DNA from: Geosiphon pyriformis uo1
Taxonomy: Eukaryota > Fungi > Glomeromycota
Direction of reading: 5' to 3'
Assembly (NCBI GenBank): GCA_016748015.1
Contig: JAAOMT010000534.1
Coordinates: 76,654-140,653 of the forward strand
DNA length: 64,000 nt
This document shows positions 2,039-55,087 of the stretch, piece after piece (position 1 is the first letter of the stretch; the number at the start of each line of letters is the position of its first letter). The position numbers were made by a program, and so were the translations under genes. Under the pieces are notes generated by a model. It did no database searches and was not told the DNA's origin. It saw only the letters and a program-made list of their open reading frames with translations.

Positions 2039-2485
2039 TAGGCACTCTAAATCGCCTTATCTGTTCGACGTTCAGTTTCTGCTGTCACCGATATATCATG
2101 TGGGGAAAAATTTTCGGGGGGAAGGGGTTTTGGTAAGGGTTACCTATCTAAAATCGTCTGATTCTTTTTAAGTTACAAATGAAATATTGTAATCTTATAA
2201 TTGTAAAATAATAAAGTATTAATAATAAAATAATAATTATAAAGAAGGCTCAAAGACCTCATTATCTGGAGTTTTACGCAACAAATGCAGATTTGTTTTT
2301 GGTTAATCTAATATAAAAGTAGTAGCGCCATTTGAAAGAAGACGTGAAATTTAACAGTGAAGTGGAAGTGTTAAAAAGGGCCGTGTGAGCGTCAAAAGTG
2401 GTTGAAAGTTTAAATGCTGAAATGAAATCCCTGCTGGTTATGGATGATTATCAGTGGGAAACAAGTTTTAAAATATCAACAATTT

Positions 2486-2488
<3 letters not shown>

Positions 2489-2553
<65 letters not shown>
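2489..2553. repeat. (AAT)n microsatellite
   Basis: Perfect AAT run. Confidence 0.95.
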
Positions 2554-4649
2554 CTAATTACATTGTAGATAAATTATCAAAAAATTGTTTTTTCTCATTC
2601 TCATTTTTTTTATTTGAATAAACATAAAATATTAAAATTTTGGGGATTCAATCAATCATGTTTTTGTTTTTTTTTGGTATGCTTGTTAAAACAAACAAAA
2701 AAACCATAAATTTTTTATACAAAAAGATAGCATCATCATCATCATCATCATCAAAACCTTATTTCAATATTCTGGTTTGTTAAAAAAACTTCAGTGTTAT
2801 TCGGAGTTGGGCGGACCTTGAATCCGGAATTGTGATTCAAAAACTTGAATTTCTTTTTTCCGAGTAGATCTCCCGAAATAATTACTATCTGTATTTTAAA
2901 TCTCTTTACACTGTTCTTATTGAAATAAACAGTAAGAATTTTTCCATAGAACTTAATTTTTAGGAAAAGTTTTGATTTTCACATCTTTAATCTATCTTTC
3001 TAGTTTTTGATTCAAAATATTTGGTATCAGTCCGATAGTTCACAAAATCCCAAACTAGTTGCGCTTGTTTAAAGAAATCTTTTTCTAAAATTTTCATAGC
3101 AATTTTTTTGACGTTAACTATAGTTATTTTTAAATTTTAGACCAGTCTGGAATAATTTCCTTAAGAGCGTGACCCAAATTTGGTTTCAAGTTACCACATC
3201 ACGAACTTCTTTTTAATCGAATGAGTCACACCAGTCCAAAAAAACTTGTGGATAATGAGAATCTGGGAATTGAACAATCAAAAACTTCTATTAGAATATT
3301 ATGTCATCAGAATTGAGGCTTGCATTTTTTGAACATACGCACGTTTTGAAACAGGTTTTATACATTCGTAAAAGACAGAGATTTTCATGGCTGGCTAACT
3401 AGACAGTCGGTTAGAGACGAAATAAAATATATATCCTGTTGCCAATCTTGAGTGATTTCTATACAAGTATTTATATTGGGTGCCAATCTATTTTTTAAAT
3501 TATATCTCAAATTTTATTTATGATATAACGACTGACATTTATTGCTGATATCTATTTTCCCTTCCTTTTTTTAGACAACTTATTTTTGGATCCTAATATT
3601 CTATGATAGGCTATTTTTTACTGAAAAGGAATTTCCTTCCTTGGCATTAAAATTTAAATTAAAAAGAAAATATTTTTGCATTGAGAATTCTAAATTTGAA
3701 AGTATTACGACAGTAAGCGATATATTAAAGATAAATATATTTAATGAATAAAAGGTTTTTTAAAAAACCTTGATGTAATTTTTATAAGTTATTTTTGAAA
3801 ATATGGTTTATACCAAAGATTTTCTATAAAAATATGATAAAAATAACTTGAAAATTCTTCACAGGAATAATATTTTTAGGCTAAATTTTACCTGATGTTA
3901 TTAAAATACTTTTTAAAATTGAATCAAAAACTCATTTTTTTAGTAGCTGTGATAATTTTTCTTTCTATATGTGCAGAAAAGCTGTAGAAGTTTGAGAAAT
4001 CTGTGGAATGCAGAAAGGCTGATGCAGTTAAAAGAAGAAACAATGGGTCAAGGATTTTGAGGGAGTAAGAAAAGTGGGAGACGCAAGCATAAAATTTGTA
4101 ATAATGACTTCGTAACTCAGGTGTTGGGAGGAGGGGAATTTACAAAACTGTTTACATCCGTTTATACATTTATCCATTTGAGGGAATGTTTGATACAATG
4201 TTACCATCTATTTTTTTTTAATAAATTATACTTCTTTAATATGATTTTACAATCTTATAAACTCTTTCACAAACACTAGCTGCAGTGAAAAACGTGTTTA
4301 CCAGACTTAAAGCTGAAAATTCTCTTTTGCAAGCCGAAAGAAATGTTAAATGCCAAGGTAAAGAGGCCACACAATGCAAGTACTCCTATTATTCTATATC
4401 ATACAACATTCACAGTTTTTTTTAGAAAAAAACTTTATCAAACTTGCAATTACGAAAGAGGATAATACATTTTGTTTTCTGCGTTTTAGTGTAATTTAAC
4501 GGATACATTATTAAAAAATTTTGAGTAAATATTCATTCTTGCAATTATCATGTTAATTATTTATGTTATTTATTACTTAAGTATAAACTTATAATAACAT
4601 ATCATAATAGAAATTAAAAATAGTTTTTTAATTTATTAATTATATAAAA

Positions 4650-29010: not shown

Positions 29011-30514
29011 ATGAAATTAATTTTAAAATTATCATTTTTGTCAGCTTTTTTATTTTTCGACTACATTTCATCCCATTCTGGAGTTTTGCCAAAACCAAAC
29101 CTATCAAAGCTTCATTCCATAAATGAAATTAAGCATTGGAATAATGCAAACCAATGTTTTATTGAAAAATCAAAGGGGATTGATTCAACTTTTTCGCCTC
29201 AAAAAATAAATCGATGGTCAAATATCTCACATTTTCAGGGTAAAAATTTTATTCCAATGACACACAGAACAATAAAAAAATGCAATATAAAATCACAGAG
29301 ACTTGATAAGTTCAACTTGAAAAATTTTACCAAATTCAAAAGAAATGAATTAAAACCACCACCCAAACGGCCCATCAGACCTGATCCATCACAGCCACCA
29401 GTATTCCCACTCCCGCAGAAAAAATTGGCTTACAAACACCAAATTCACTTTATTCGACAAATGGCGCAATATGCAAATTTCGCTTATTGTTTTCCAGAGC
29501 ATAATGAAATTGGAAAAGTCATTTGGGACCAAAATGTTATTGGTAAGTTTTCTTATTGTTTAATGAATGTATTCTCTGAATATGGATGAAATCTTGAAAT
29601 TAACTTATTTTGAATTTCCTTATCAGCCGATGCATTTCAGAGAACCTTGGAAGACACAATAATTATTGCCTACTTTCAAGGTCCTCGTTATACTAGAGAT
29701 GAATGGAAAAAACGACCAATTGATCTTTTCCCTATTGAAGTGGATAAAAATCTCCCGCAAAGACCTCTCGTGGACTCAGTGTGGCATCAGCATGTCCAAG
29801 AAATGATGCCTTCTCTTATCCATAAATTTAAAAAGTTTTGGCGAAATAAAAAAAACGAATTTCCTTGGAAGATGTATTTTGTTGGGCACGGAATTGGGGG
29901 AGGTATGAAGCTTCAAATAATGTAAATTTTATATGTTTTGAAACTCATTTATCTTTTTATGAAAGCATACGCAATTCTGGCAGCCACCTATATTCAAAAA
30001 TTGATGGTCCAAGAATTTCAGATGGATGTCTCTAAAATTTCAGTGATAACTTTTGGCGCGCCACGAGTTGGAGATTTCTATTTTGTGAGATTCTTGAAGA
30101 GAACATTCAATTATGATGGATTTATTCGCGTCACTCATTCAAATGATTGGATACCACGAGATTTTATGGCGAAAGGAAATTTTTTACATTACTACAGAGA
30201 ATTCTGGATTGAAAATCAGGATTGCGATTGCAATTTGAGTGTGCAAAAAGTAGAAGATGTGATATATAACTGTTTCGGAAGGAAATCTCTGCTTGATTTT
30301 GATGAAAACAATGTAAGGGATAAATTGTACCATACATATACTGTTTTTGGCTTGGGTTACCTTGTGAAAACTCACTGCTCTTAATTTGAAGGAATGTAAC
30401 TTAGGCACCGTGGATTCATTAGAAAATAAAGAACATGATGTTCATCTTGGCCCATATCTTGGAACAACCATGGGAAATTGTGAAGGGTTTGCGCTCGGCA
30501 AGGAAATGTATTGA
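29011..30514 (+). CDS. Secreted class 3 lipase-like protein, predicted catalytically inactive (GHGIGG)
   Basis: Exons 29011-29542, 29627-29902, 29966-30312, 30392-30514; signal peptide; AQYANFAYC, FVGHGIGGAYA, VITFGAPRVGD, RVTHSNDWIPR, HLGPYLG. Confidence 0.9.
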
Positions 30515-34137: not shown

Positions 34138-36487
34138 CTATGCTTCAGGATCAGCATCTTGCTCGGTCCCTCCTGCCGGGTCAACTTTTTTGTTTAGAGG
34201 ATAAGGACCTTGATGAATTTCAAGTGTAGCCGTTTTACATCGACTGTAGACTCGCAAGCCCAAGGTTAATTGCCATCCACCATTCTGTCGAAAATTGATA
34301 TCTTCATGATTCTCATCATCATCGTCTTCATCATCATTCTGATCACGGCCTGTTGGAAGCGAATCAATTCGTCGTCGTTTTACTTGCGCTGCTTCTGTAT
34401 CAGCAGATGCGGTGACATTTGCTAACCAGATTGATTGAATGCGTGGGACAATTTCATAAACACCCCCTTCGAGATCTACTTCGTGATTGGTACTTCGGTA
34501 ATTTTGTGGAGTCAAGAAGCTCCGGGTGAGATATGTTTTTTCGCCTGGTTTATAAACTCGGAAACGAAGTTCACATCTTTTGAAGGCAAATACTTAATAA
34601 GGTTATGATGAAGAAGGGAAATAATCGAGGAGCACAGAATTATTAAAGAAGCCTGTTTACTCGAATTTTTGGGTTCCACGTGCGTATCGATCATCTGGCT
34701 GTTGAAGGAGAATTACTACGTTTGAGGCTTCTGGCAGGGTCAAGATAAATTTCCCGTCAGATTGTGGTTCAACATTATACTTTATCCAACCAGATAGAAC
34801 ATTCCATGAATTATCAAAGATTCGACACTTGTAAAGACGATGAAAGTGTTTTAACAAATCATCATATGACATCCAGAAAGCACCGTCATTGCCAAATTTG
34901 TGATCCAATTTTGCCATATATTCCGCAGTCCATTCTTCACTCTTATCACTCCAAGCACCTTCGAACATATTTTGAAGATGAATCGTTTGGATGAATCAAT
35001 TAGAAAAACAACAAACGGTAGATCAGACTTGAAAATTCAAGAGGAAAGTTTACCTTCCCACTCATTTTGCCCATGAGGGTTTCGAACTTTTACCAATTTT
35101 TGGCCGTCAACTTCTATAACTTGTAAAATACTGTATGCATGACCTTCAACTATTCCCATGGGTTCCAAAGTTGGGTCAACTGAACGGCCGAGTCCGAATA
35201 GAACACTTTTATTGACAGCTGCTAATTCTTCGTGCCAAAATTGGTTAGGGTTCATTATGTCTTCACTATGGAAAATAGTGTATACTCCTCCAGTTAAATC
35301 TTCCAGCCCTAGATGAAAAAAGGTTAAAACACAGAGTTCAGGTGAAATCTTTTGGGAAAAAAATGAATTTACATACCTTCACCGGCTTCACCGCCAGTTA
35401 TGCTCTCATAATCCCCATGAATCTTTGCAAAGGCTTTCTCTATTAATGGCAGCCATGTTTCGTTTGGATCCAAACATTGCCTGGGAAACATGAATGTTAG
35501 GAATCATGAGTTTCCGGATAATAACAAATATTAAATTTGGGGTTCAACCTACGCAAATGCAAGTTTGTTCTGATCATTAACAAATAATTGATCATCAACT
35601 ACTGTGGATACCCAATCCCCGTCCTAAAATCAAAAATTATTATATTAGGTCTAAAATTATTTAAAAGGGATCGAGTTCAAGTCTCATACAAACCTTAAAG
35701 AAGATAAAACCATAGACCTGAAAGCGAAGAAAAAATTTCAAAATTTTTTAAAAGAAAACTCGTGGTTGAATTTTACAAAAGAATTTTTACTCGATCTGTA
35801 CCCCAACTTCTTCATCTCTAGCGACGCAAATTGTTTCCAATAAACCAGGGATATTGGCACAAGTTGAAATAGCCGATAAAAACCAGCAATCCCCAACCTG
35901 AAAAAAGAAATTTAACCACAAATCCGATGAAAAGCATTTAATTTTATTGAACAAAACTCATTATGATTTAGAATATTTTACCAAGCCTTGAACAATATCC
36001 CCTGGATGAACACCATCAGCGTAAAATCTAGGGCTCGACATAATTCGGGGGATTCTAGCGACCTTCAAATTTCCATAATCTGTAGTTTTTGCGTTATATA
36101 GTGCGGCCTCTTTGTCAGTTAAATCGAATTCTCGATCCCGAAATTTTCGATTAAGTTGGCGGCATTCTTTGGCAATCTAAATAGAGCAGGTTCAATGGCG
36201 TACATCCAGGAATTGAATTGAATTCAATAGAAAATACAAACCCTATCAACTTTCTGTCTGGTAATATTTTTTGCTTGCTCAAGATTAAAAGTAGCAGCAA
36301 CACTAATCGAATTATGGGAGGTCAAGTTCTCCTGATTCTTGATCACTCGAGCAAGTTGATTTTGTTTGATGGTACTGGCAGGAATCGTAATTGAATCATT
36401 AAGCCCGAGATCTTGAAGGTTCTCGGCAAGATCTTCAATTGGTTCTTGCGAAATTTGTTTCTGTTGAGGGTTTTTTTTGCTCGGCAT
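34138..36487 (-). CDS. Calpain A (peptidase C2 CysPc + domain III-like), catalytic triad intact
   Basis: Multi-exon; DIVQGL|VGDCWFLSA (Cys 35886-35888), ETWLPLIEKAFAKIHGDYE, EDLTGG, GHAYSI, VRNPHG, GAWSDKSEEW, DGAFWMSY. Confidence 0.92.
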
Positions 36488-36548
36488 GATGACAAGTTTT
36501 TTCAAAAAATCACCCGTATAAGGCAAGTTAACATTAAAGCCTTTTGAA

Positions 36549-36924
36549 TTTTATAAGGATAATGTATAAGGGGTACAGGTCCCTTTAAGGGTCCGTCAAT
36601 TTCTTAGGGTTTCTTCTCACATCTGCACAGATTTGGTAAGATAGTCTTCAATTTAATACAGCTAACCATTTCGAGTTCAGAAATTAGGCAAAGCCCAAAA
36701 ATATTTTGTGACCAGACTTATTTTACTTGGCCAATTAATTTGTACAAATTTCTAACAGGATGAATACCTGATCTATTTGAGCCAAATTGTGTTCTTTGTT
36801 CATTGTGTACCTTTGTTATCAACGAAATTATTATGCTCTAAATTGGGCGATATCAAAATGCATTGTGCATTTTTCGAGGTACCTTATTCTACACGTAAAG
36901 TTTAAAGGATTTGCACCTATAAAA
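36549..36924. promoter_or_regulatory. Divergent promoter of calpain A and pseudocalpain B, with outward-facing TATA boxes
   Basis: TATAAAA on the minus strand at 36549-36555 and on the plus strand at 36918-36924; ATGs at 36487 (-) and 37011 (+). Confidence 0.5.
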
Positions 36925-37010
36925 CCAATTACCGTTAAAAAATCCACAATCACCAAAAAGTTTCTCTTAGAGCTCAAGATCATAGATCTTTTACATAATT
37001 TTGTATCAAA

Positions 37011-39375
37011 ATGCCGAGAAACAAAAAGAACAGAAAACCAAGCGTAATTGATAACGATGATCGTATCGCTGAAACCGCCAGCACAACTGGTGTTGAAGAA
37101 GCCGCTTCTAAAACAAAACAAATACGTCAAGCTAGAGCCAAGAAGCAACGAGATAATTTGACGTCACAAAACATTGTTAATGTTGCTGCCACTCAAAATC
37201 TTCAACGTGCTATTGAGATTACCAAGGAGAAAGTTGCAAGGGTATACATGAGATTGTTAGATACATTTTATTGAAAATAAATGATTCACAATTACTTACC
37301 AATATTTGCTAAAATATTAATTTAGATTGCCAAAGAATTTCGTCAACTTAATCGAAAATTCACCGATTCTGAATTCAATCTCGAAAATATCGACGAAACT
37401 CTTTACAATGCCCATGAATTTAATTGGGGTGGTGTTATACCAAAACGTATATCTAGTTTTTATAAAGGGTCTAAATTTTATGCCGATGGTCAACATCCTG
37501 GCGAAATTTCTGAAGGAACGGTATATAGATTTCCCAATTCTTCAATGATTTCTTATATTGCGGAGGTATCATTAATTGTTGATTTATTCTCTGTCTTAGA
37601 TACATGATGTTTGGTTCTTGGCTGCAGTATCAATTTGTAGAAATATTCCCGGCTTAATCGAAACTATTTGTGTTGATCGAGATGAAGAAGTTGGGGTAAG
37701 TTTTTTTATTTTGAAAGTTTATTTTTAAAAGCGCACATAGTAAATGACCAAATCTTCCAAATCTTAGGTCTATGGGTTCATTTTTTTTAAGGTCAGTTTT
37801 GCTACTGTAAGCAAATCATTCAAAAAAAAGTTTTTTTTTGAATTTTTTGACTACTAGGATGGTGATTGGATTTCGACGGTAGTCGACGATAAATTTTTTG
37901 TACTTAAAAATCCTAATGGTGTTGTTGCACCATTATTATCGTAAGTTTTCGTTTTATTGGTCGAGCTGTTCAATTAGTTTTCAGGCATTTATATTTCATT
38001 TTTGCAAAATTTAGCGAGTGTAAAAATCCGATGGAAACATGGTTACCATTACTTGAAAAAGCTTTTGCTAAAGTTCACGGCGATTATGAATCCATCATGC
38101 AGGGAATTGTGGGGCAAGGTAGTAAACAAAATTATATTTGAGTGAATTAAACCTTTTGTATAAACCAAATCAATTTCATATAAAACTTTATCGCTAAATT
38201 TCTAGGTCTCGAAGATCTGACTGGAGGGGTTTATACAACCTTTGTTACCTCTGATATTATGGATCGAGATCGGTTCTGGCAAGAAGAACTATCTTTTGTA
38301 AATACGGATCGACTTTTTGGCGTACAACGTGCTCCAGGTACCACTACTATTGCAAATGGCTTACTGGATGGATTTTCCTATAGTGTTCTCCAAGCAGTAG
38401 AAATTGATGGCCACAGATTGGTAAAAGTTGGCAATCCTTATATTAACAGGGGTGAATGGACTGGTAAGCATTTACTGATGAGGCTTGAGATTGACTATAT
38501 TCCATCCTAATCAAAACTCAATTCTTTGCTTAGGCGCTTGGAGTGATGGGAGTGAGGAATGGACATCAGAAACTATGGCCAGATTGAATCACAAATTCGG
38601 GAAAGATGGCGCCTTTTGGATGAGTTATGAAGATTTACTCTACTATTTTAGCTCAATTGGCAAATGCCGAATTTTCGATTCGTCTTGGTTTGTTCATTCG
38701 GCCTGGATAAATTATAACATAGTTCCCATGTCTAATGGAAAGTTCATCTTGAAGCTTCATGAAACAGAAAAAATTATTATAGTCCTTCAACAGCCAGACT
38801 CTCATTACTTTTATGAGTCTCCCCAATATATGTAAGTGCTTTTATCTTGTTAAATTATAAATTCATTGCATTTTGCTAATCTCAAAGAATTGCTCTTTAT
38901 ATTTAGATATCATTTAAGCTTTCGTGTATATAAACAAGGTTCCAAATCGTATTTGATACGAAGTTCATCCACTACATCGCCACTGGATAATCGAAGTATC
39001 AATATTGAAATAGAATTGGAAGCTGGAACTTATGAAATTATACCTCGTATTATTCGTACCGAGTTTAAAGAGCAAGCAGCTGGACACAATCCCAGAGTAG
39101 CTCAAAAGAAACAAACAAGGATTGAACAATTGGAGCATGGCCGAGATGCTAATGATGATTCTGATGATGAAAATGAAAATAACCAATCGCATAATGTACC
39201 ACAGTGGGAACTGAAATTGGGATTAAGAGTTTATAATCGGCGTGAAGGGGCTACAGTGTCCACTTATCAAGGACCTTTTCCGTCAGATGAGCAGGATCCA
39301 AGTACTTTTGAAGAAGATCAGGATCCCGAAACCGAGACATCGACTGCCACAATAAATGGGGAAGCTTTAGAATAA
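37011..39375 (+). CDS. Calpain B, intact gene, predicted inactive (Cys>Val, His>Phe)
   Basis: EISEGT|IHDVWFLAA (GTT 37609-37611), DGFSYSV (TTT 38373-38375), VGNPY; all other calpain motifs and splice sites intact. Confidence 0.9.
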
Positions 39376-40015
39376 TAGTTTACTTCAATGTAGGTTATGA
39401 AAGATTAAAAATAATTTTTTCGTGAAGGCCTTGAATTCATGATTAACTTAGCTAAATTATTTATAAATGAAATGAATAATCTTTTAAGAAAATACTCATC
39501 AAAATTTTCAATTTCGATATAATGGAACATCAATTTTTGAAGTCCTGATTAGCGATTACAACTTGAGATTTGCTCTCTTATTTATTATCAATATTTCGAT
39601 TTAATAATAAAGAACTTTTCTTGATAAGGATCTAGCTTTTTTTTGTGACATGTACATTTTTATCATCCATCAAATAATTTTAAGTGGTTTATTTACTAAA
39701 TGTGCATTCGACGATTATACGGGGCGCAATTACTATTTTTATCAAGGCCAATTGTGCAATGGTTACATTTCATCTTGGAAAAATTTCGTAGATACAAGAA
39801 GATATTAAATATGTCGTGTTACGTGTTTGTCAACCTCTCTAATTTGTGAAGGGAGATGTTAAAAGGAGGGTAGAAAATAAAGGCAACTTTTGCAAACCCT
39901 TTTTAAAAATAAACTTTAATTACCTGTTCCTTTTTGTACCCATTTAAATGATATATAAAAGAGTACTGCCAATAAAAAGCTTTAATTTTGGGAAAATTTT
40001 TAAACAAAATAATTA

Positions 40016-42328
40016 ATGGCATCAAACACAGAGGAAATCGAGATTACGGCGGCGAGGATAACGAAGAAACAACGTCAAGCACGAGCTAAAAAACAACGCG
40101 AAAATCTTACGGCACAATCAAATTTTAGCGTCGCTGCAACTTTGAGTTTTGAACGTGCGGTTGAGATTACCAAACAAAAAGTTGCTCGCGTATGTTTAAA
40201 TCTTTATTTAGCACAAATGAATTAACACTTATCATCGAACTGAATTCACCCATTAATTAAACTTTGGCCTAGATCTCTAAAGAATCCAGATATTTTAATC
40301 GAAAATTCACTGATCGAGAATTTGATCTCTCAAATCTTAACGAAACTCTTTATTGGGAGCACAAATTGGATTTCGGGTCTCCAAGTGATAAACGGATCTC
40401 TGCCTTGTATCCAGGCTCGAAATTTTATGCTGATGGAGCTCATCCAGGTGAAATTGCTGCCGGAGTGGTAAGAAGTTTTGTATTAATTTGGACGCATCCT
40501 AAACAGGTTTGAATTAAGACTTAACGACGAAATTTTAGCTCTGGGATATTTGGTTTGTTGCTGCAGTCTCAGTTTGCAAGAATATACCAGGCCTATTGGA
40601 AAGAATATGCGTGGCACGCGATGAGGAAGTGGGGGTAAAATAGGATTTGTTTTTACGTATGTTTTGGAACAATGCAATTGGCATCTCATACAATTTTTCC
40701 CAATTGTCGATTTAAAGGTTTATGGATTTATCTTTTTTAAGGTTCGCAAAATTACTTAACAGTTACAATCATTTGCTTCCCATTTTCTCTAACTTCGCGC
40801 TATTATTCTTTATAAGGACGGGGAATGGGTATCAACTGTTGTAGATGATAAAATATTTGTTAGCCCTTCACCGACAGGCAATTTAACTCCCACATTTGGG
40901 TAAGTATTGAAATTGCTTTCTAATGAAATCATGTCTAAAGATTGTTTTGCAAATTAAAATCATAATTTTTGATTCTTACCAGAGAATGCAAAGATCCGAA
41001 GGAAACTTGGTTCCCGCTGATCGAAAAGGCTTTCGCAAAGATTCATGGTGATTACGAGTCAATTTTCAACGGTGTTGTAGGCCAAGGTATGAACTTGATT
41101 TATTTACAATTTCGAGATTTTCTTGATCAACTGAATCTTAAAAATCAATTATGCAACTATAGGCCTTGAAGATTTAACAGGAGGCGTATGCACAACTTTG
41201 ATCACCTCCGAAATTATGAACGTGGAACGTTTTTGGAAGGAAGAATTATCAAATGTGAACCAAAATGTTCTCTTTGCCGCCCAAAGAGATCCTGGAACAA
41301 CCGCTGATGGCAAAGGTTTAGCTGATGGTTTTACCTACTGCATTTTTAAAGCAGTTGAATTTGATGGGAAACGATTATTAAAAATGGGCAATCCTTTCAC
41401 TAGAGGATCTGAATGGAATGGTAAACAAAAATTCAGATATTTTTTAATTATTTTTTAAAGAGTTTCAAGGAAGTATTATTTACTCAGGGCCTTGGAGTGA
41501 TGGAAGTGAAGAATGGACATCCGAGACTATGAGTTTATTAGATCACAAGTTTGGAAAGGACGGGGCTTTTTGGATGACTTATGAAGACTTACTCCTTTAT
41601 TTCAGCTCGATTGGAAAATGCAGACTGTTTGATTCGTCTTGGTTTATTCATTCCGCTTGGATTAATTACAATGTTGTTCCCAAATCCAATGGTCATTTCA
41701 CTTTAACTCTCCCTGAACCTGAGAAAGTTGTGATTATGCTTCAACAACCAGATACCCACTATTTTAATGAGTCTGCAAAATTAACGTGAGTTCCCGAAAA
41801 GTTTTATCAAGTTAACAATTTCATCTACATTTCTAAAACAACCTCATTTTCTTCCCTATTAATTTTAGCTATCAGTTGAGTTTTCGAGTATACAAACAAG
41901 GTGCAAAGACATACTTACTACGAAGCCCATGGACACTTTCACCTCTCGACAACCGTAACATTAACATCGAGGTTGAACTCGAAGCAGGGACTTATACCAT
42001 CGTCCCTCAGGTTTTACGGGTTCCTGCTACAGCAGTAGCCGCTGCTCCAACGATAGATCAAGCTGCAATATTAAAGAAGGAGAGACGTATTACAAGGCTT
42101 GATAGCGGACGAGATGCAAATGATGATTCAGATGAGGAAGGTGATGCAGAGTTAATTGCCAAGAAGACTAGTGATTTTGAATTAAAGTTAGGTCTAAGAG
42201 TTTATAATCGGCATCAAGGAGCTACTCTTCAACCCTACGAACAAGAGTTTCCTTCTGGAGAGAGCCAGACTGAATACGATCAAGATCCCGAAGCTGAGAC
42301 AACAACTGGGAATTTGAAGCCTGAATGA
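40016..42328 (+). CDS. Calpain C, intact gene, predicted inactive (Cys>Ile, His>Phe)
   Basis: EIAAGV|LWDIWFVAA (ATT 40548-40550), DGFTYCI (TTT 41330-41332), MGNPF; TATATAAA at 39952-39959. Confidence 0.9.
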
Positions 42329-44129
42329 TTAATTTAATCGACTTCTCATTTTTTAAATACTTTTTAATGACAAAATTAATTAAAACACCAACTACTCTAT
42401 ATTTGATTAAGTCTTGTTATTTTCCGGGAAAAGTTTAACTTTGATTCGAATTTGAAAATTCTTTTATCTTTATAAAAACTGCGATCAAGCAATTCGTAAA
42501 AAGATCTTGGTTAAGATTTTAATAAAAAATTTTATGCTCGATCTTGAGGAATAATTGTAAATTTTACAAATTGTGGATTGGTTTCAAAAATCCCGTGTTT
42601 TCAATGTGAGATAAGGCAAACAATTCGAAAAAAATATGCTGAAATCAGAGGGGTTGGGAGACATCGAAGAATAAGTGAGATGAATCAATTTTTAAATGGG
42701 GTAAAATGCTCATCACAACATTCTATTTCCCAAGAAGAATGTGAAGCAAGGATTAATATAAACCAGTACTTGTTGAAATTAAAATTCTCATTCACATAAT
42801 ACTAATTCTTCACAAAGTTACCAGATGACCGGATTGAACTTTCAAGCGTGAAAAATGTACAGCACTTCACATATTGTTTATCGAGAAAATTATTTTGAAA
42901 ATTGCCCTGAAAAAAGGTTTGAAGCAAATGTTGGGTGATTAAATAATCTTTTGAAAATTATAATGACTTTTTTTTGAAACGATAATTTGATTATATTGTA
43001 AAGATATTTTATGAAAATATTTTAGTTAAAAATGATATCTATTTCTCAAAACTTTTCAATGGTGAAGCTTCCTTATTTTTAATGGAAAAGATATAATTAT
43101 AATTCCAGAAGGAAATTTATTTATTTGCAATTTTTTAAGTCTGCGAAAGCGAATATTTTTTAACGAAAAATTTTTAATAAGCATCAACACACGCTTAAAC
43201 TTTAGTTTTTAAAATACAATTGACGCGTTAAAATTCTCAAGACTCACTAAACCTTCAACTGATCTTTTTAGTCGCTAGCGATCTCTTACGCTATTAACCG
43301 TAACTATAATCTTAATCAATATTCGAAATCCTATTTGCAATATTTCAAAGTATGAGGATGTCGGCAACAGTTTCTATAGATTACAATTGTTCATTAATCA
43401 AGATCACTTGGGGGAGTTGACAAACTTTAAAGATTTCGGGATAAGAATTAATTAGAGCTTTCCCAGAAAAATCAATTAGAAGGTATAATATGACCAACAG
43501 GTCCATTGTAAATTTTTAGATGGGGACGATCTTCCTGTACATTGTCTATCACTTTTTAAGGACTGATTATCGTTAAAATACGATCTAATCTGAACCCAAC
43601 AACACGAAAGATTAAAAATAACCCCGATAGATTTCAAAATTTTATGGGGATAGATTTTTGCTTGCAATATCTTTCCAAGTCGTGTCATGCCAAAATATTT
43701 ATATGGAAGACGAGTGGGGATCCCTCACAAACAATTCCTACGCAATAGTTTGTAAAAAAGCCAAGAAATCTGCACCAAACACTCTTCTTCTTTACTGACA
43801 TGTGCTGCTTCAAATCATTACATTTTTTAACATGCTTAACATAAAATGAGTTTCGCTCTCATTGATTCGTGAATGCAGGAAATCTGGAGATTGCTGTAAT
43901 CTAGAATATTTTCAATAGAATAAGATATAGGATCATGATGTCATCGTATAAGGATATTTGGTTCAAAAAAATAGTCTTAGTATTTTTTAAAAAATTTATG
44001 AGGGGCTTCTATAAAAAGAGTTTTGTCAAACATGCTGTAAAAATGTTGAAAATTTTAAATTCGTCTTCCTTGAAGGTCTCCATTTGTATCCATCAATTTA
44101 ATTGTTAAATTTCTTTACATTTAGCCAAG

Positions 44130-46606
44130 ATGTCAAGTGAAAACACTACATATTTTTCTAATTGGCAACCAATTCAAGAAACTGGGCTCAAAAACATAAA
44201 ATCCTCTCTGAGATTCCAAAATTCACAATCTGCTACAAAAAAAGCACGAGAATATAGAGCTAAAGCAAGTTATCGTGACCTGACTTTGAAAGATGTAGTG
44301 GTCGGTCGAGCAACTGCTAACCTTGAGCGTGAAATAAAAATTACCAAGCAGAAAGTTAACAGAGTTAGTTTTATTTAGAAAATAAACATTAAAAGTTTCC
44401 CACTTCACAGTTGTGCAAAGATGATTAAATGAAAATCATCCTTTAAATTTTTATCTGCACTCTTTTTTTTTGATATCAGATTGTAAAAGAATGCAGACAA
44501 CTTAATCGGAAATTCCGAGATCGAGAATTTAGTCTTGAAGATGATCCTTTTGGCGCGCTGTTCTGGAATTTTCAACATCATAATGGTTATTTGCCCGATG
44601 GAAAGCATTTGTATATTCAAAGAATACCCGATTTTTTTACAAACCCTGTTTTTTTAACAAACGGTATCTGTTCCGGAGATGTCATGCAAGGAAGAGTCAG
44701 TAAATAAATTTATTCTCCAGCTAACTGGAATTCAGGAGGATAAAAACTCATTACATGTTTATTCTGGATTGTCCATAGATTGGTGATTGCTGGGTCCTAT
44801 CTTCTGTGTCAACTTGCTCAAATATCAGAGGGCTGATTGAAAGGCTTTGTGTAGCTCGTGATGAACAAGTTGGGGTAATAAGAGGTTTGAAAATTCTTAA
44901 TTTAATCTTGAAATTCAAATTCACTTTTATATTTTTATATGCACTTAGGTTTACGGATTTGTGTTTTTCAAGGTGAGAGCTTGAGCTTTTAATGTTTCAA
45001 ATACCCATACAGAGATTGAACTGATGAATTTTCAATGAAGGATGGCGATTGGATATCGACTATCGTTGACGACCAATTATTCTGCTGGAATGAACCCTTA
45101 GTTCCAGGCAGGCCTGAACTTTTTTCAGCGTAAGCCTAAATTTAAGTAAATTTTTTCATGATTTTCTAACTTGGCTAGGACTGTACCAAAACATGTTGCA
45201 ATATTTCTAGGTATTGCAAAAATGAAAATGAAACATGGTTGCCATTGCTCGAAAAAGCATTTGCAAAAGTCCATGGAGATTATGAATCGATTGATGGTGG
45301 TTTGACAGGTCAAGGTAAACTGCAATTATGTGAAGTATTTTCACTTTTTCATAGGTTATTTTCTAATCACGCTCTCTTACAACGATAACTAGGTTTGGAA
45401 GATTTGACTGGTGGCGTATATACCTCATACAATCTAAAAGATATTTTGGATAAAGATAGGTTTTGGCGTGAGGAATTATCGCAGGTTAACGTAGATCGTT
45501 TATATGGTGCCGAAAGATATGGTTTTGGTGAAAATCAGCTAGGTTTACTCGATAGTCACGCATATAGCTTTCTGAGAGCAGTTGAAATCAACGGGACAAG
45601 ATTGGTTCAAATTCGAAATCCTCTTGGTAGAACTGAATGGAAGGGTAAAAGGAAATTAATAATTACTCTTTAGAATTTGATGTGCCAGGTTTCAAGTTAA
45701 ATTTTATCTTACATTATTTAGGTCCTTGGAGTGATGGAAGCGAAGAATGGACTCCGGAATGGATGATGGCTCTTGATTATAGGTTTGGGAATGATGGCAC
45801 GTTTTGGATGGCCTATGAAGATTTACAAAAGTTCTTCACCCAATTGGGAAAATGCCGAATTTTTGACCAATCATGGAATGAACATTCCGTTTGGATTAAT
45901 TACAACGTTGTGCCGAAATCCAATGGTCAATTCAAAATTTCGCTTTCAGAAGCGGCTAAGGTTATTATTGCCTTACAACAACCTGATCAAAGATATTTTC
46001 ATAGAGTACAGACTTATAAGTAAGGGGATTTTTGTTAATCCAAATATGTTCCGTTGCTCGGGACAACCAACTGACTCACATTCCTCTGATGACATGTGTT
46101 TTAGTTACTCATTGAGTTTTAGGGTGTTTGTTGAGGGATCCCAGACCTATTTAATTAGAAGTCCTTGGATTGTTAATTCGCTTGACAATCGTAGTGTCAA
46201 CTTAGAAATCCTTCTTGAGCCCGGTAACTATGCAATTATCCCAAGAATTTTACGCAACAAAGTTCCCCAGCCAGCCCCAACTCCACCTGAGCCACACGAA
46301 AAAAATTTCTCACCACTTGAAATAGTCCCTAAGGTGACTGAACCTAATCTGGCCGAAGAAGCAATAAAACAAAAACGAATTGGTAACCTCTTTCAAGGTC
46401 GTGATGCAAATGATGATGGCTATGAAGAGGATGATCAGCGGAATCACTCTATAGAAAAGAATGAACCTTGGGAATTAATTTTGGGTTTACGAGTATATAC
46501 CCAAAGTAATGGATTGACTCTCACGTCCTACGAAGGATTCTATCCAGTTACTCCAATGTTTGGCGCCTATACTGAAGAAGAAGAAGAAGAAGATCCTGAA
46601 GCCTAG
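44130..46606 (+). CDS. Calpain D, catalytic triad intact
   Basis: DVMQGR|IGDCWVLSS (TGC 44788-44790), DSHAYSF, IRNPLG, GPWSDGSEEW; TATAAAA at 44010-44016. Confidence 0.92.
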
Positions 46607-50622: not shown

Positions 50623-51906
50623 TTAACTAGAAATAACATCAGGTCCCATCATAATACCAAAGTATGGTCCATTATGAAGATTAAACCTTGGACTCTTAAA
50701 CTGATTGACACAAAACTAAAATTTAAGAGTGAAAACAAATTATTTCAACAGATTGAAAATCTTTTCAATCAGAAATCATAACTTTAGTTTATATACCTCA
50801 CTCTCGGCCCAAAAATATTCTCCAAATTGAAATTGGCTGGGACCATAACAGAAAAATATTTCAATTTCTTCATCACATGTACAATCTGAAGATATCCAAA
50901 CTTCTGATAATGGATGAGCTAAATCTTTCAAATCTAAAGATTTCTCAGGCAGCCTAGGCACATAATCATCGTATAGCGTTATACGATAAATATGAAATAA
51001 TTCAGCGGAATGAAGGCGATTGAGGAATGCAGCAAAAACTCTGTTGCCTATTCTTGGTAGTCCAAATGTAACCGCCCGCAAAGGATACTTATAATTTGGT
51101 GCAATGGTTTGCAAATAGTCAAGGAGAGCAAATATAGCATAGACTAAAGCAATTTCCAAAAATTAAAATAAAATATCGGCTATTTAGTTGAGATTAAATT
51201 CAGAACGGTAAAAAGTTCTTTGCTATAAAATTTTTACCTCCCCCTACGCTATGTCCAATGGCAGTAATTTTCTTTATAGTATGTTTTTTTAAACCATCTC
51301 TAATCATACTCAAAATCATGAACCCAAATCCTTGGTACTTTTTATACCAATCTGAATCAACTAGTGCTCCTTTAGGACTTAGAGGACCAAGTTTAAGCGT
51401 GAAATCGATTAGTTTTGGCTGCCTTGACAACCATTCTTCTTGAGTGAGAGTCTCTCCACTTATATAAAAGAATAACTCCTCTTTAACCACCTCAATTTTA
51501 GCTGCATACAAAATAAAATTCTTAAGTTTTTGAATCCGACATTAACTTTGATTTATATTTAAAATTTACCGTCAATGCCTGGAGAAATGTAATTTTTTAA
51601 ATTTTTAATTTGATAACTTTTCTTTGCATATTCTGCATCAAGTCGAAAATCAAAAACATTGGAATCAACTAGTTGCTTTAATCCATGAGTAAACTCTGAT
51701 CTTTTTTGGAATTCTATTTGAAATTCTCTTATCAGTGAGGCATATTTCATAGAATTAAAAAAATATATATATTCAGAAATAATAAAATTACCATTAAATT
51801 GAAAGGATGAACCATTTTTCAATAGCTGGATAGATTCAACGCAAAAATATTTTAACGCGACAAAAAAATACACTAATTTTAGGAATATCAAAGTAAAATA
51901 TTTCAT
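50623..51906 (-). CDS. Secreted class 3 lipase-like protein, GHSVGG nucleophile intact
   Basis: Exons 51906-51570, 51501-51238, 51143-50797, 50715-50623; signal peptide MKYFTLIFLKLVYFFVAL; IGHSVGGVYA, VTFGLPRIGN, RITLYDDYVPRLP, HNGPYFG. Confidence 0.88.
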
Positions 51907-52669
51907 TTCAAACGATATCATGAACAGAAAGTAAGATTTACAGCTGATATTTCTCAAGTGAATTTATTATTAAAGAATTTATAATACAACGGGCAAAATA
52001 TATTCCGATTTATATTAATTTCCAAGAATTTATGAAACTCTCTTTATGAAATATTTTTGAGATTTTCAAAAGATTAGGCTAAAAAATTTTTGGGATTTTA
52101 TGCGATGGTATTCGAACACGAACTTCTTAAAAAAAATTATAGTAAATTCTGTTCTAAATTTATATCGAGTAAAAAATTTTTTTTAACTTTTAATTTTGAT
52201 TGTAACTTATAACAAATTTTATATAAGTTTCACTTTTTTCCAACATGAAAAAGGAGCTCAAAACAAAGCTATCAAAGCATTTTTGAGTCCTTAATGAATA
52301 TTTTGTGACGTAGCACTTTTAAATACTGATGAAATTCCGATGTTTAAGTAAAATTATTGCACACAAAAACCCTTCAATATGATAATGAAAACTTGCTCAT
52401 TAGACTCATATCGAAGCCGAGATATGGACTTAAATAAAGCTGTTCAAATGCTAGGTTACCATAATCTTGTTTAATAAATGTACCAGTTTGAATAGGGAAC
52501 TAACAACAATAGCAACAATAAAAACTCTTGCTTCTTTAATGCTATCAGGATATTTTACTAAAATAGTTGGTTTTGTTTCCAAAAAAGAATAAAGAACCAG
52601 AAAGTTTATAACCTTCTAGCTCCCAGGTCAAGTAAAATTGTAATAAATACGATCAGATGTACAAACTTA

Positions 52670-54300: not shown

Positions 54301-55087
54301 CTATTCGAAAACTTGATCCCAATTAATTTTTTTTATATTGCCAAATTCGACTTGGATGCTATACGAAATCATCTGATTATTTTTTCCTTTCACAGGTATT
54401 ATTTGACAATCCTTGATAGGATGCAAGGCCGATATATACTCCTGAATCTTTGTTCGAGCTTTTTCAACTTTCAATATTTCGAATCCCACGGTTCGAAATT
54501 CATGAGCGATACGCATCATCGGTTCCGAGCTTTTTCCACTAAGAGACGGTACCAAAAGGCCAGGATAAAAATGTATTGCTTGTACAGGAACAAATTGTCG
54601 TTGCGATTGTTCCAAAAGTTTCACGAGCGTTCTTTTAAAATCTTCAACGACCATAGAGACGAATTTTTCATCTAACGGTGACATGATCACTGGTGGGCAA
54701 TCGATTTGAAAATATTCAAGTTCCTCTTGAAGTGGTGAATGAAATGATTCGGCGATTTGTTCCCAAGGTATTTTACCTTTTCGATAGAATTCCATAATGT
54801 AATGGAAAATATGGCCATCACGATCAAAAAAGTATTCTTCATCTCTGTCGGGTTTTAACATATCTTTGTTTCTCTCTGCAAACATTGTTCCTAGCAGCGT
54901 TCGAGGATATTCAGTCAAAGTAGATCGAAAGGTTTCATACTAAAAATATTTTTCAGCCATTTCGTGAGGATTTAATCGATATTTCTGTACTAAAAGTTCT
55001 ATAAACAATCTAAAAGTTGAAGCTCGGAATTTTCGTTGTTTCTACCTTTGTCCCACCAATATTTAATACTATTCGATCTCGACTCAT
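54301..55087 (-). CDS. BTB/POZ (KCTD / potassium-channel T1-type) domain protein
   Basis: Exon 1 55087-55046 MSRDRIVLNIGGTK; exon 2 from 54939 YETFRSTLTEYPRTLLGTMF..EYFFDRDGHIFHYIMEFYRKGK..EELEYFQI. Confidence 0.92.

Follow-up and report, generated by a model that had tools for sequence, protein, structure and literature searches.

A tandem calpain cluster of Geosiphon pyriformis with two retained pseudoproteases

A stretch of 64,000 nucleotides from the genome of Geosiphon pyriformis uo1 (contig JAAOMT010000534.1, positions 76,654 to 140,653; hereafter the window, to which coordinates refer unless stated otherwise) carries four tandem calpain-family genes at 34138-46606, here called A to D (locus tags G9A89_001559 to _001562). 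Our results show that the two inner genes, B and C, encode functional pseudoproteases that have been under purifying selection since their inactivation and are not decaying pseudogenes. The two proteins combine a calpain fold, as modelled for B, the loss of catalytic residues, spliced transcripts and evolutionary constraint, the features by which pseudoenzymes are recognized, and they are flanked by A and D, in which the catalytic residues are intact.

Gene models and catalytic residues

Pfam Peptidase_C2 matches were found on exons of all four genes, of which A lies on the minus strand and B, C, and D on the plus strand. Homology searches were performed first exon by exon and then with the full-length database proteins; intron boundaries were taken from transcript contigs for B and C, and from spliced protein-to-DNA alignments for A and D. 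Each gene consists of nine exons and eight introns with identical intron positions and phases, including a microexon of 24 nucleotides, and all 32 introns are of the GT..AG type. The spliced models are residue for residue the deposited proteins G9A89_001559 to _001562 (P0003, P0151, P0152, and P0159), and together with the Pfam matches they bear out the four-gene calpain cluster that a preliminary description, made from the sequence alone, had proposed at this place.

Gene A (G9A89_001559, 575 amino acids; 34138-36487, minus strand), encoding a CysPc core and a C2-like domain, has its exons at 36487-36242, 36176-35982, 35897-35802, 35717-35694, 35623-35553, 35480-35377, 35308-35054, 34958-34661, and 34576-34138. 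Gene B (G9A89_001560, 585 amino acids; 37011-39375, plus strand) has exons at 37011-37241, 37326-37520, 37600-37695, 37768-37791, 37858-37940, 38015-38118, 38206-38463, 38534-38831, and 38907-39375, and those of gene C (G9A89_001561, 563 amino acids; 40016-42328, plus strand) lie at 40016-40189, 40273-40467, 40539-40634, 40718-40741, 40817-40899, 40983-41086, 41163-41420, 41488-41785, and 41869-42328. Gene D (G9A89_001562, 604 amino acids; 44130-46606, plus strand) is made up of exons 44130-44363, 44480-44695, 44779-44874, 44949-44972, 45041-45129, 45211-45314, 45393-45644, 45722-46019, and 46105-46606. The microexon (35694-35717 in A, 37768-37791 in B, 40718-40741 in C, and 44949-44972 in D) encodes eight residues of a conserved motif, VYGFIFFK, which is kept in all four genes and is identical in two Ambispora genes (L004, 10816-10839; L006, 7495-7518).

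The divergent start codons of A and B are separated by a spacer of 523 bp (36488-37010), which could be a shared promoter region. The sequence TATAWA occurs 62-120 nucleotides upstream of each of the four ATG codons, at -68 in A and -93 in B. The TATA boxes named in the preliminary description are thus present at every gene, but about 0.7 such words per 300 nucleotides are expected by chance in an AT-rich spacer, the density is no higher than this, and we do not count them as evidence.

The catalytic residues divide the cluster into two pairs. Protein A keeps Q145, C151, H302, and N322 in the motifs QGLVGDCW, GHAYS, and RNPHG, and D keeps Q148, C154, H310, and N330 in the motifs QGRIGDCW, SHAYS, and RNPLG. 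In B, alignment and codon reading on the plus strand place Glu140 (GAA, 37512-37514) at the position of the oxyanion-hole Gln, Val146 (GTT, 37609-37611) at that of the catalytic Cys, and Phe301 (TTT, 38373-38375) at that of the catalytic His; the corresponding residues of C are Ala121 (GCC, 40459-40461), Ile127 (ATT, 40548-40550), and Phe282 (TTT, 41330-41332). The catalytic Asn is kept in both, as Asn321 in B (38433-38435) and Asn302 in C (41390-41392). When an exon profile was aligned with PDB sequences, G-H-A-Y-S of calpain-9 was paired with G-F-S-Y-S of B and G-F-T-Y-C of C, and RNP with GNP, and the alignment of calpain-3 with full-length B set its oxyanion Gln against E140, Cys129 against V146, and the His against F301. 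A phmmer search of the PDB sequences with the His-bearing exon of B alone gave no match; the four-sequence exon profile and the full-length protein did match.

At the codon level, TGC was changed to GTT or ATT, CAT or CAC to TTT, and CAA to GAA or GCC. With the exception of CAA to GAA, each change requires at least two substitutions, in agreement with the earlier view that the losses are not simple C>T or G>A decay. These motifs, alignments, and codons uphold the division into A and D, which keep Gln, Cys, His, and Asn, and B and C, which have lost the first three. They support the conclusion that B and C are catalytically dead at every canonical residue except the Asn and, judged by the triad and the oxyanion Gln, are predicted not to be peptidases.

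All four proteins pass the PF00648 cut-off of 23.8 bits (A, 239.7; B, 175.3; C, 170.2; D, 200.6), as do single exons. Peptidase_C2 is the only Pfam family above threshold in A-D; Calpain_III was found below threshold in D (E=0.001) and C (E=0.16). No EF-hand family was matched in A-D by Pfam at E-values up to 1, the proteins ending soon after the C2-like domain, and no MIT domain was matched either, so that the absence of EF-hands and of the MIT domains of PalB/Rim13 was confirmed. The penta-EF-hand (PEF) domain, which is the dimerization module of classical calpains, was likewise not found in A-D by Pfam.

Modelling of B by AlphaFold2 from 40 homologues gave a structure with a predicted local distance difference test score (pLDDT) of 79.7 and a predicted template modelling score (pTM) of 0.81. 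Its best Foldseek match was full-length m-calpain (3bow_A; E-value 1.5e-25), with 543 aligned columns covering the core and the C2-like domain, and chains of protease cores matched it with TMt values of 0.74-0.85. The N-terminus of B was modelled as two long helices. The predictions thus show for A-D an architecture of an N-terminal helical region, a CysPc core (PC1 and PC2), and then a C2-like beta-sandwich in which an acidic loop is disordered. The Glu of the calpain-3 motif DGEFWM is Ala in B and either Ala or Thr in each of A-D (G-[KN]-D-G-[AT]-F-W-M; exon 38534-38831 in B). This Glu is a Ca2+ ligand in the mu-calpain core structures and in classical calpains, and the Ca2+ dependence of the whole fungal CysPc-C2L family is uncertain.

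Transcription and constraint of the inactive copies

One public run, a 46-Mb set of assembled contigs that give no levels, strand, or rare isoforms, was compared with the window over 36800-42600. It contains a B contig of 1770 nucleotides that matches 36993-39365 without mismatches across eight GT..AG joints, and a C contig of 1550 nucleotides that spans about 40020-42190, also with eight GT..AG joints, in which the microexon of 24 letters is seen partly, as 14 letters between two joints. Use of the microexon in both genes is confirmed by these contigs. Because sixteen introns have been precisely removed, the set behaves as a transcriptome despite its automatic label 'may be DNA'. Another contig of the same run, with 90-95% likeness, has a loose end that reads NPLGRTEWKG; since this is the sequence of D, D is probably expressed too.

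The transcripts follow the modelled splicing of B and C at the exons encoding DVW and DIW. An alternative exon encoding DCW or HAY was not present on the sense strand within either gene, and the splicing proposed earlier therefore stands. A 'CHAYS' word at 40613 lies on the antisense strand and was rejected as a chance match. At position 40050, 31 nucleotides from the end of its contig, the genomic C is replaced by T in the C transcript, which changes Ala12 to Val; the cause may be a mistake of assembly close to the contig end or allelic variation among nuclei.

B and C are old duplicates with a common stretch YEDLL.YFSSIGKCR.FDSSWF.HSAWINYN. They are 64% identical to one another at the protein level, and A and D are 47-52% identical to one another and to B and C. 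Between B and C the nonsynonymous divergence (dN) is 0.265 and the synonymous divergence (dS) is saturated by the Nei-Gojobori method (NG86); 50 of 143 fourfold sites are identical, and the intron identity of 0.555 is close to that of shuffled sequence, 0.542. Free decay is ruled out because frames of 563-585 codons and the splice sites have outlasted the randomization of introns and fourfold sites. The preliminary description had claimed just this combination of well-diverged silent sites and introns with open frames, splice sites, and shared protein stretches.

The pattern of losses points in the same direction. Of 148 columns that are at least 85% conserved in 36 family members from outside Geosiphon, 141 are retained in A, 135 in D, 125 in B, and 120 in C (81-84% for B and C). 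The columns lost in both B and C gather at the active site (D137E, Q140, G144, C146, H301, A302, R320G, and G325), many of them with the same replacement and others with differing residues. This clustering, together with the shared replacements, indicates a single remodelling event in the ancestor of B and C and not general erosion. Outside the triad, the derived substitutions R90T, P126S, Q194K, L207P, and R421H are common to both proteins. With frames intact despite saturated neutral sites, conserved columns kept, and branches not elongated (see below), the long selection on non-catalytic B and C that had been suggested earlier is well founded.

Origin and distribution of the cluster

Word searches with A and B returned relatives at 40-55% identity from Glomeromycota, Mortierellomycota, Pezizomycotina, chytrids, and oomycetes, and family members from Closterium as well. 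A C-terminal W.L.LGLRVYS motif is common to A-D and to the fungal non-PalB calpain-like family. In a census of 257 proteins the Gln, Cys, His, and Asn set was kept in 152, most of the others being fragments, and B and C were the only proteins in which Gln, Cys, and His had all been replaced. Neither the word searches nor this census yielded a dead orthologue in another species. Sporadic catalytic substitutions in Ascomycota carry the database labels P0139, P0108, and P0131/P0286. Within the family, Neolecta irregularis OLL24391.1 has a single substitution (GNSW) and a Friedmanniomyces endolithicus protein has His changed to Tyr and Asn to Ser, both from unverified gene models. In P0131, an unverified Logan-derived protein of 485 amino acids, the Cys column is occupied by Ser within a poorly aligned motif; at 90% clustering this protein groups with one from Neohortaea acidophila.

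A maximum-likelihood tree built from 30 proteins joins B and C as sisters with support of 100/100 and unites A-D in a single Geosiphon-only clade (88/90) that is sister to the copies of Ambispora (85/67), the nearest sampled relative of the glomeromycotan Geosiphon. As B and C are sisters, inactivation predates their split. This split is itself old, because the path from B to C (0.72) is longer than that between orthologues of two Ambispora species (0.44). Measured from the base of the clade, the paths of B (0.67) and C (0.77) were judged not to exceed the paths of A (0.71) and D (0.95).

Conservation of the cluster in relatives had been made a test of the earlier proposal, and here the outcome went against it, since the four genes belong to a clade of Geosiphon alone and each of three Ambispora loci has one calpain gene; the 6-10 kb of flank at these loci showed no tandem cluster, and the short contigs (17-29 kb) leave room for a more distant paralogue. 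A neighbouring protein of 580 amino acids in one of these loci (L006) was considered as a second calpain and rejected, as it is not calpain-like by tblastn. Tandem arrays of the same family also occur in Mortierellomycota (adjacent tags BGW42_007136/007137), where all copies are catalytically intact.

The Geosiphon genome, sampled here by an AT-rich assembly of 128 Mb, has seven calpain-family loci overall, two of which are dead. About 130 kb downstream of the cluster, at about 247.7-249.5 kb of its contig (L001, about 2200-3960), there is a fifth and more divergent paralogue, which keeps GDCW, GHAYS, and RNPWG; its rough model has two in-frame stops, probably from misplaced exons. Two distant loci of the GNCW type on other contigs (C664 and C668) may be PalB-type genes.

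The calpain cluster is flanked by two class-3 lipase genes (Pfam Lipase_3) in opposite orientation, at 29011-30384 on the plus strand and 50776-51957 on the minus strand. At the nucleophile elbow, which is G-H-S-V-G-G in the right copy, the left copy has G-H-G-I-G-G. By this motif the left copy may have lost the catalytic Ser and be a second inactivated enzyme homologue. Further to the left, about 24 kb (about 4000-28000) have a G+C content of 14-26%, mostly below 21%, and a GC skew that is negative over most of this part (to about 24 kb); Tandem Repeats Finder detected no tandem arrays there at a score of at least 150. An open reading frame at 54301-54918 (minus strand) encodes a BTB_2 domain, of the potassium-channel-tetramerization type, without evident link to the cluster.

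Possible roles of B and C and related systems

We consider the following account, taken as a whole, to be probable. Its first part is shown by the results above: a lineage-specific tandem array of four calpain-family genes arose in Geosiphon, and one early duplicate lost its catalytic set, with Gln changed to Glu or Ala, the Gly before the Cys to His or Trp, Cys to Val or Ile, His to Phe, and RNP to GNP. The dead copy was then duplicated to give B and C, both of which have been kept intact, spliced, transcribed, and under purifying selection for long enough to randomize introns and silent sites. In its second part, B and C would bind the substrates or partners that A and D act on but leave them uncut, and would serve as competitive protectors, traps, or scaffolds. 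On this second part we are more tentative: B and C retain the calpain fold, the accessory regions of A and D, and most of the positions that line the cleft or are conserved in the family, and such non-cleaving binding is the role we favour, at slightly less than even odds. It is the most economical one because a newly inactivated duplicate binds as its parent does, and most of the conserved surface and the accessory regions are still present in B and C. A direct effect on A or D, as heterodimer or as inhibitor decoy, would be a narrower version of the same idea, a plausible conjecture by analogy.

Several points weigh against this explanation. The evidence for expression rests on a single run of assembled contigs, without transcript levels or rare isoforms. 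The saturated dS only bounds dN/dS (omega), at most at about 0.27 if dS is at least 1, and the constraint is drawn from the comparison of B with C alone, the dead pair having been found in a single genome of a single species. The Geosiphon-only clade is moderately supported, and CAPN6 shows that a dead calpain can act independently of active paralogues (cited in PMC3563603). Binding of shared partners, a direct complex with A or D, and a CAPN6-like role are not separated by these results, and the last of these is the main alternative.

In that alternative, B and C would be independent, neofunctionalized scaffolds whose structural or binding role is unrelated to A and D. Precedents are CAPN6, which acts on microtubules (PMC3563603), and the cytoskeletal calpain-like proteins of trypanosomatids (PMC7912814), and the five derived substitutions that B and C share outside the triad could mark a new surface. 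Both proteins are nevertheless nearer to the family consensus than would be expected for a wholly new role, and neither has gained an extra domain according to Pfam; we regard an independent scaffold as possible, if rather unlikely.

The preliminary description had instead proposed a dedicated module of protease and pseudoprotease, in which B, C, or both would contact A, D, or both, or serve as decoys for an inhibitor or effector aimed at A and D, and would thereby govern activation in the manner of cFLIP with caspase-8. The tandem adjacency, the divergent spacer shared by A and B, the common domain layout, and the presence of B, C, and D-like contigs in one run are consistent with such a module, and protease cores of calpain-3 crystallize as multi-chain assemblies, as judged from the listing of PDB entries and not from their interfaces. 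The intact arrays of Mortierellomycota show, however, that adjacency reflects origin and not necessarily mechanism, and the missing PEF domain is the classical means of dimerization; such a module appears unlikely. Its fullest form is a Geosiphon-specific control module in which the dead copies would gate or buffer the flanking proteases by heterodimerization or substrate competition, possibly tied to the unique symbiosis with intracellular Nostoc, and which would be the first calpain module of this sort in fungi. We consider this form unlikely too, slightly more so than the module in general.

Two further explanations are very improbable. Slow decay of B and C as pseudogenes transcribed by chance would account for the lost catalytic residues and for the lack of an orthologue in the other species searched, but both genes read without interruption through 563-585 codons and none of their 16 splice-site pairs has been lost while introns and fourfold sites have been randomized, an unconstrained frame of such length in AT-rich composition would almost certainly hold stops, and the branch lengths are not raised. 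That B and C are still proteases with a non-canonical or relocated nucleophile, as some pseudoenzymes have relocated catalytic residues (a general point; PMC10211241) and as the retained Asn and following Trp might suggest, is hardly credible when hydrophobic residues stand in place of both Cys (Val or Ile) and His (Phe), the oxyanion Gln is gone, and the alignment offers no Cys or Ser at neighbouring motif positions.

Dead calpains are known from several other lineages. Those of insects, CalpA/B2 and A/B4 of Rhodnius prolixus and CalpC of Drosophila (PMC11387712), resemble B and C in that clade-specific duplication was followed by loss of active-site residues and retention of the copies; they have biological roles and arose independently several times. 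The insect proteins belong, however, to the classical-type CalpA/B lineage, in which some lost EF-hands or gained MIT domains, whereas the Geosiphon pair belongs to the fungal and oomycete CysPc-C2L family, has no PEF domain, and is found in one species. CAPN6, whose role is non-proteolytic, shares with B and C a CysPc core followed by C2-type domains and the replacement of the catalytic Cys (PMC3563603), but in CAPN6 the Cys alone is replaced, by Lys, and its action on microtubules does not depend on other calpains, whereas B and C have lost Gln, Cys, and His and sit between active paralogues. In trypanosomatids, a large lineage-specific expansion produced calpain-like proteins of which most are without the triad yet expressed and functional (PMC7912814); that expansion is massive and involves kinetoplastid-specific N-terminal domains, and in Geosiphon two of seven loci are dead.

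Among fungi, A-D belong with the non-PalB calpain-like proteins annotated as 'Calpain catalytic domain-containing protein', from which B and C differ by the lost catalytic set. A study of Magnaporthe oryzae calpains (PMC4977516) treats fungal calpains in general without taking up their catalytic residues. The full-text literature on calpain in combination with Rhizophagus, fungi, pseudoprotease, or Magnaporthe/PalB yielded no report of a dead calpain from a fungus, in line with the preliminary description, which knew of no such module in fungi. Dead calpains from lineage-specific duplication are, however, established in animals and protists (PMC11387712, PMC7912814, PMC3563603), so that B and C are not a new kind. 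Caspase-8 with cFLIP and rhomboids with iRhoms (PMC6451368, PMC3149277) embody the same concept, in which the pathway of an active protease is modulated by its dead paralogue. Their folds are unrelated to that of calpains and the interaction has been shown experimentally, whereas the Geosiphon counterpart is a conjecture from adjacency and from contigs in one run.

Dead calpains are a recurring and poorly understood result of calpain gene duplication. The practical weight of the present case is limited, as Geosiphon is not genetically tractable, the pair comes from one genome, and the function of the family has not been tied to A-D. The B/C pair is all the same a clean natural example, in which a single inactivation preceded the duplication and the two copies have persisted over a very long time beside active relatives, in a family of only seven loci. 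If B and C do modulate A and D, the cluster would be a compact system for studying how a protease family gains a built-in competitor or regulator, and pseudoprotease biology would be extended to early-diverging fungi.

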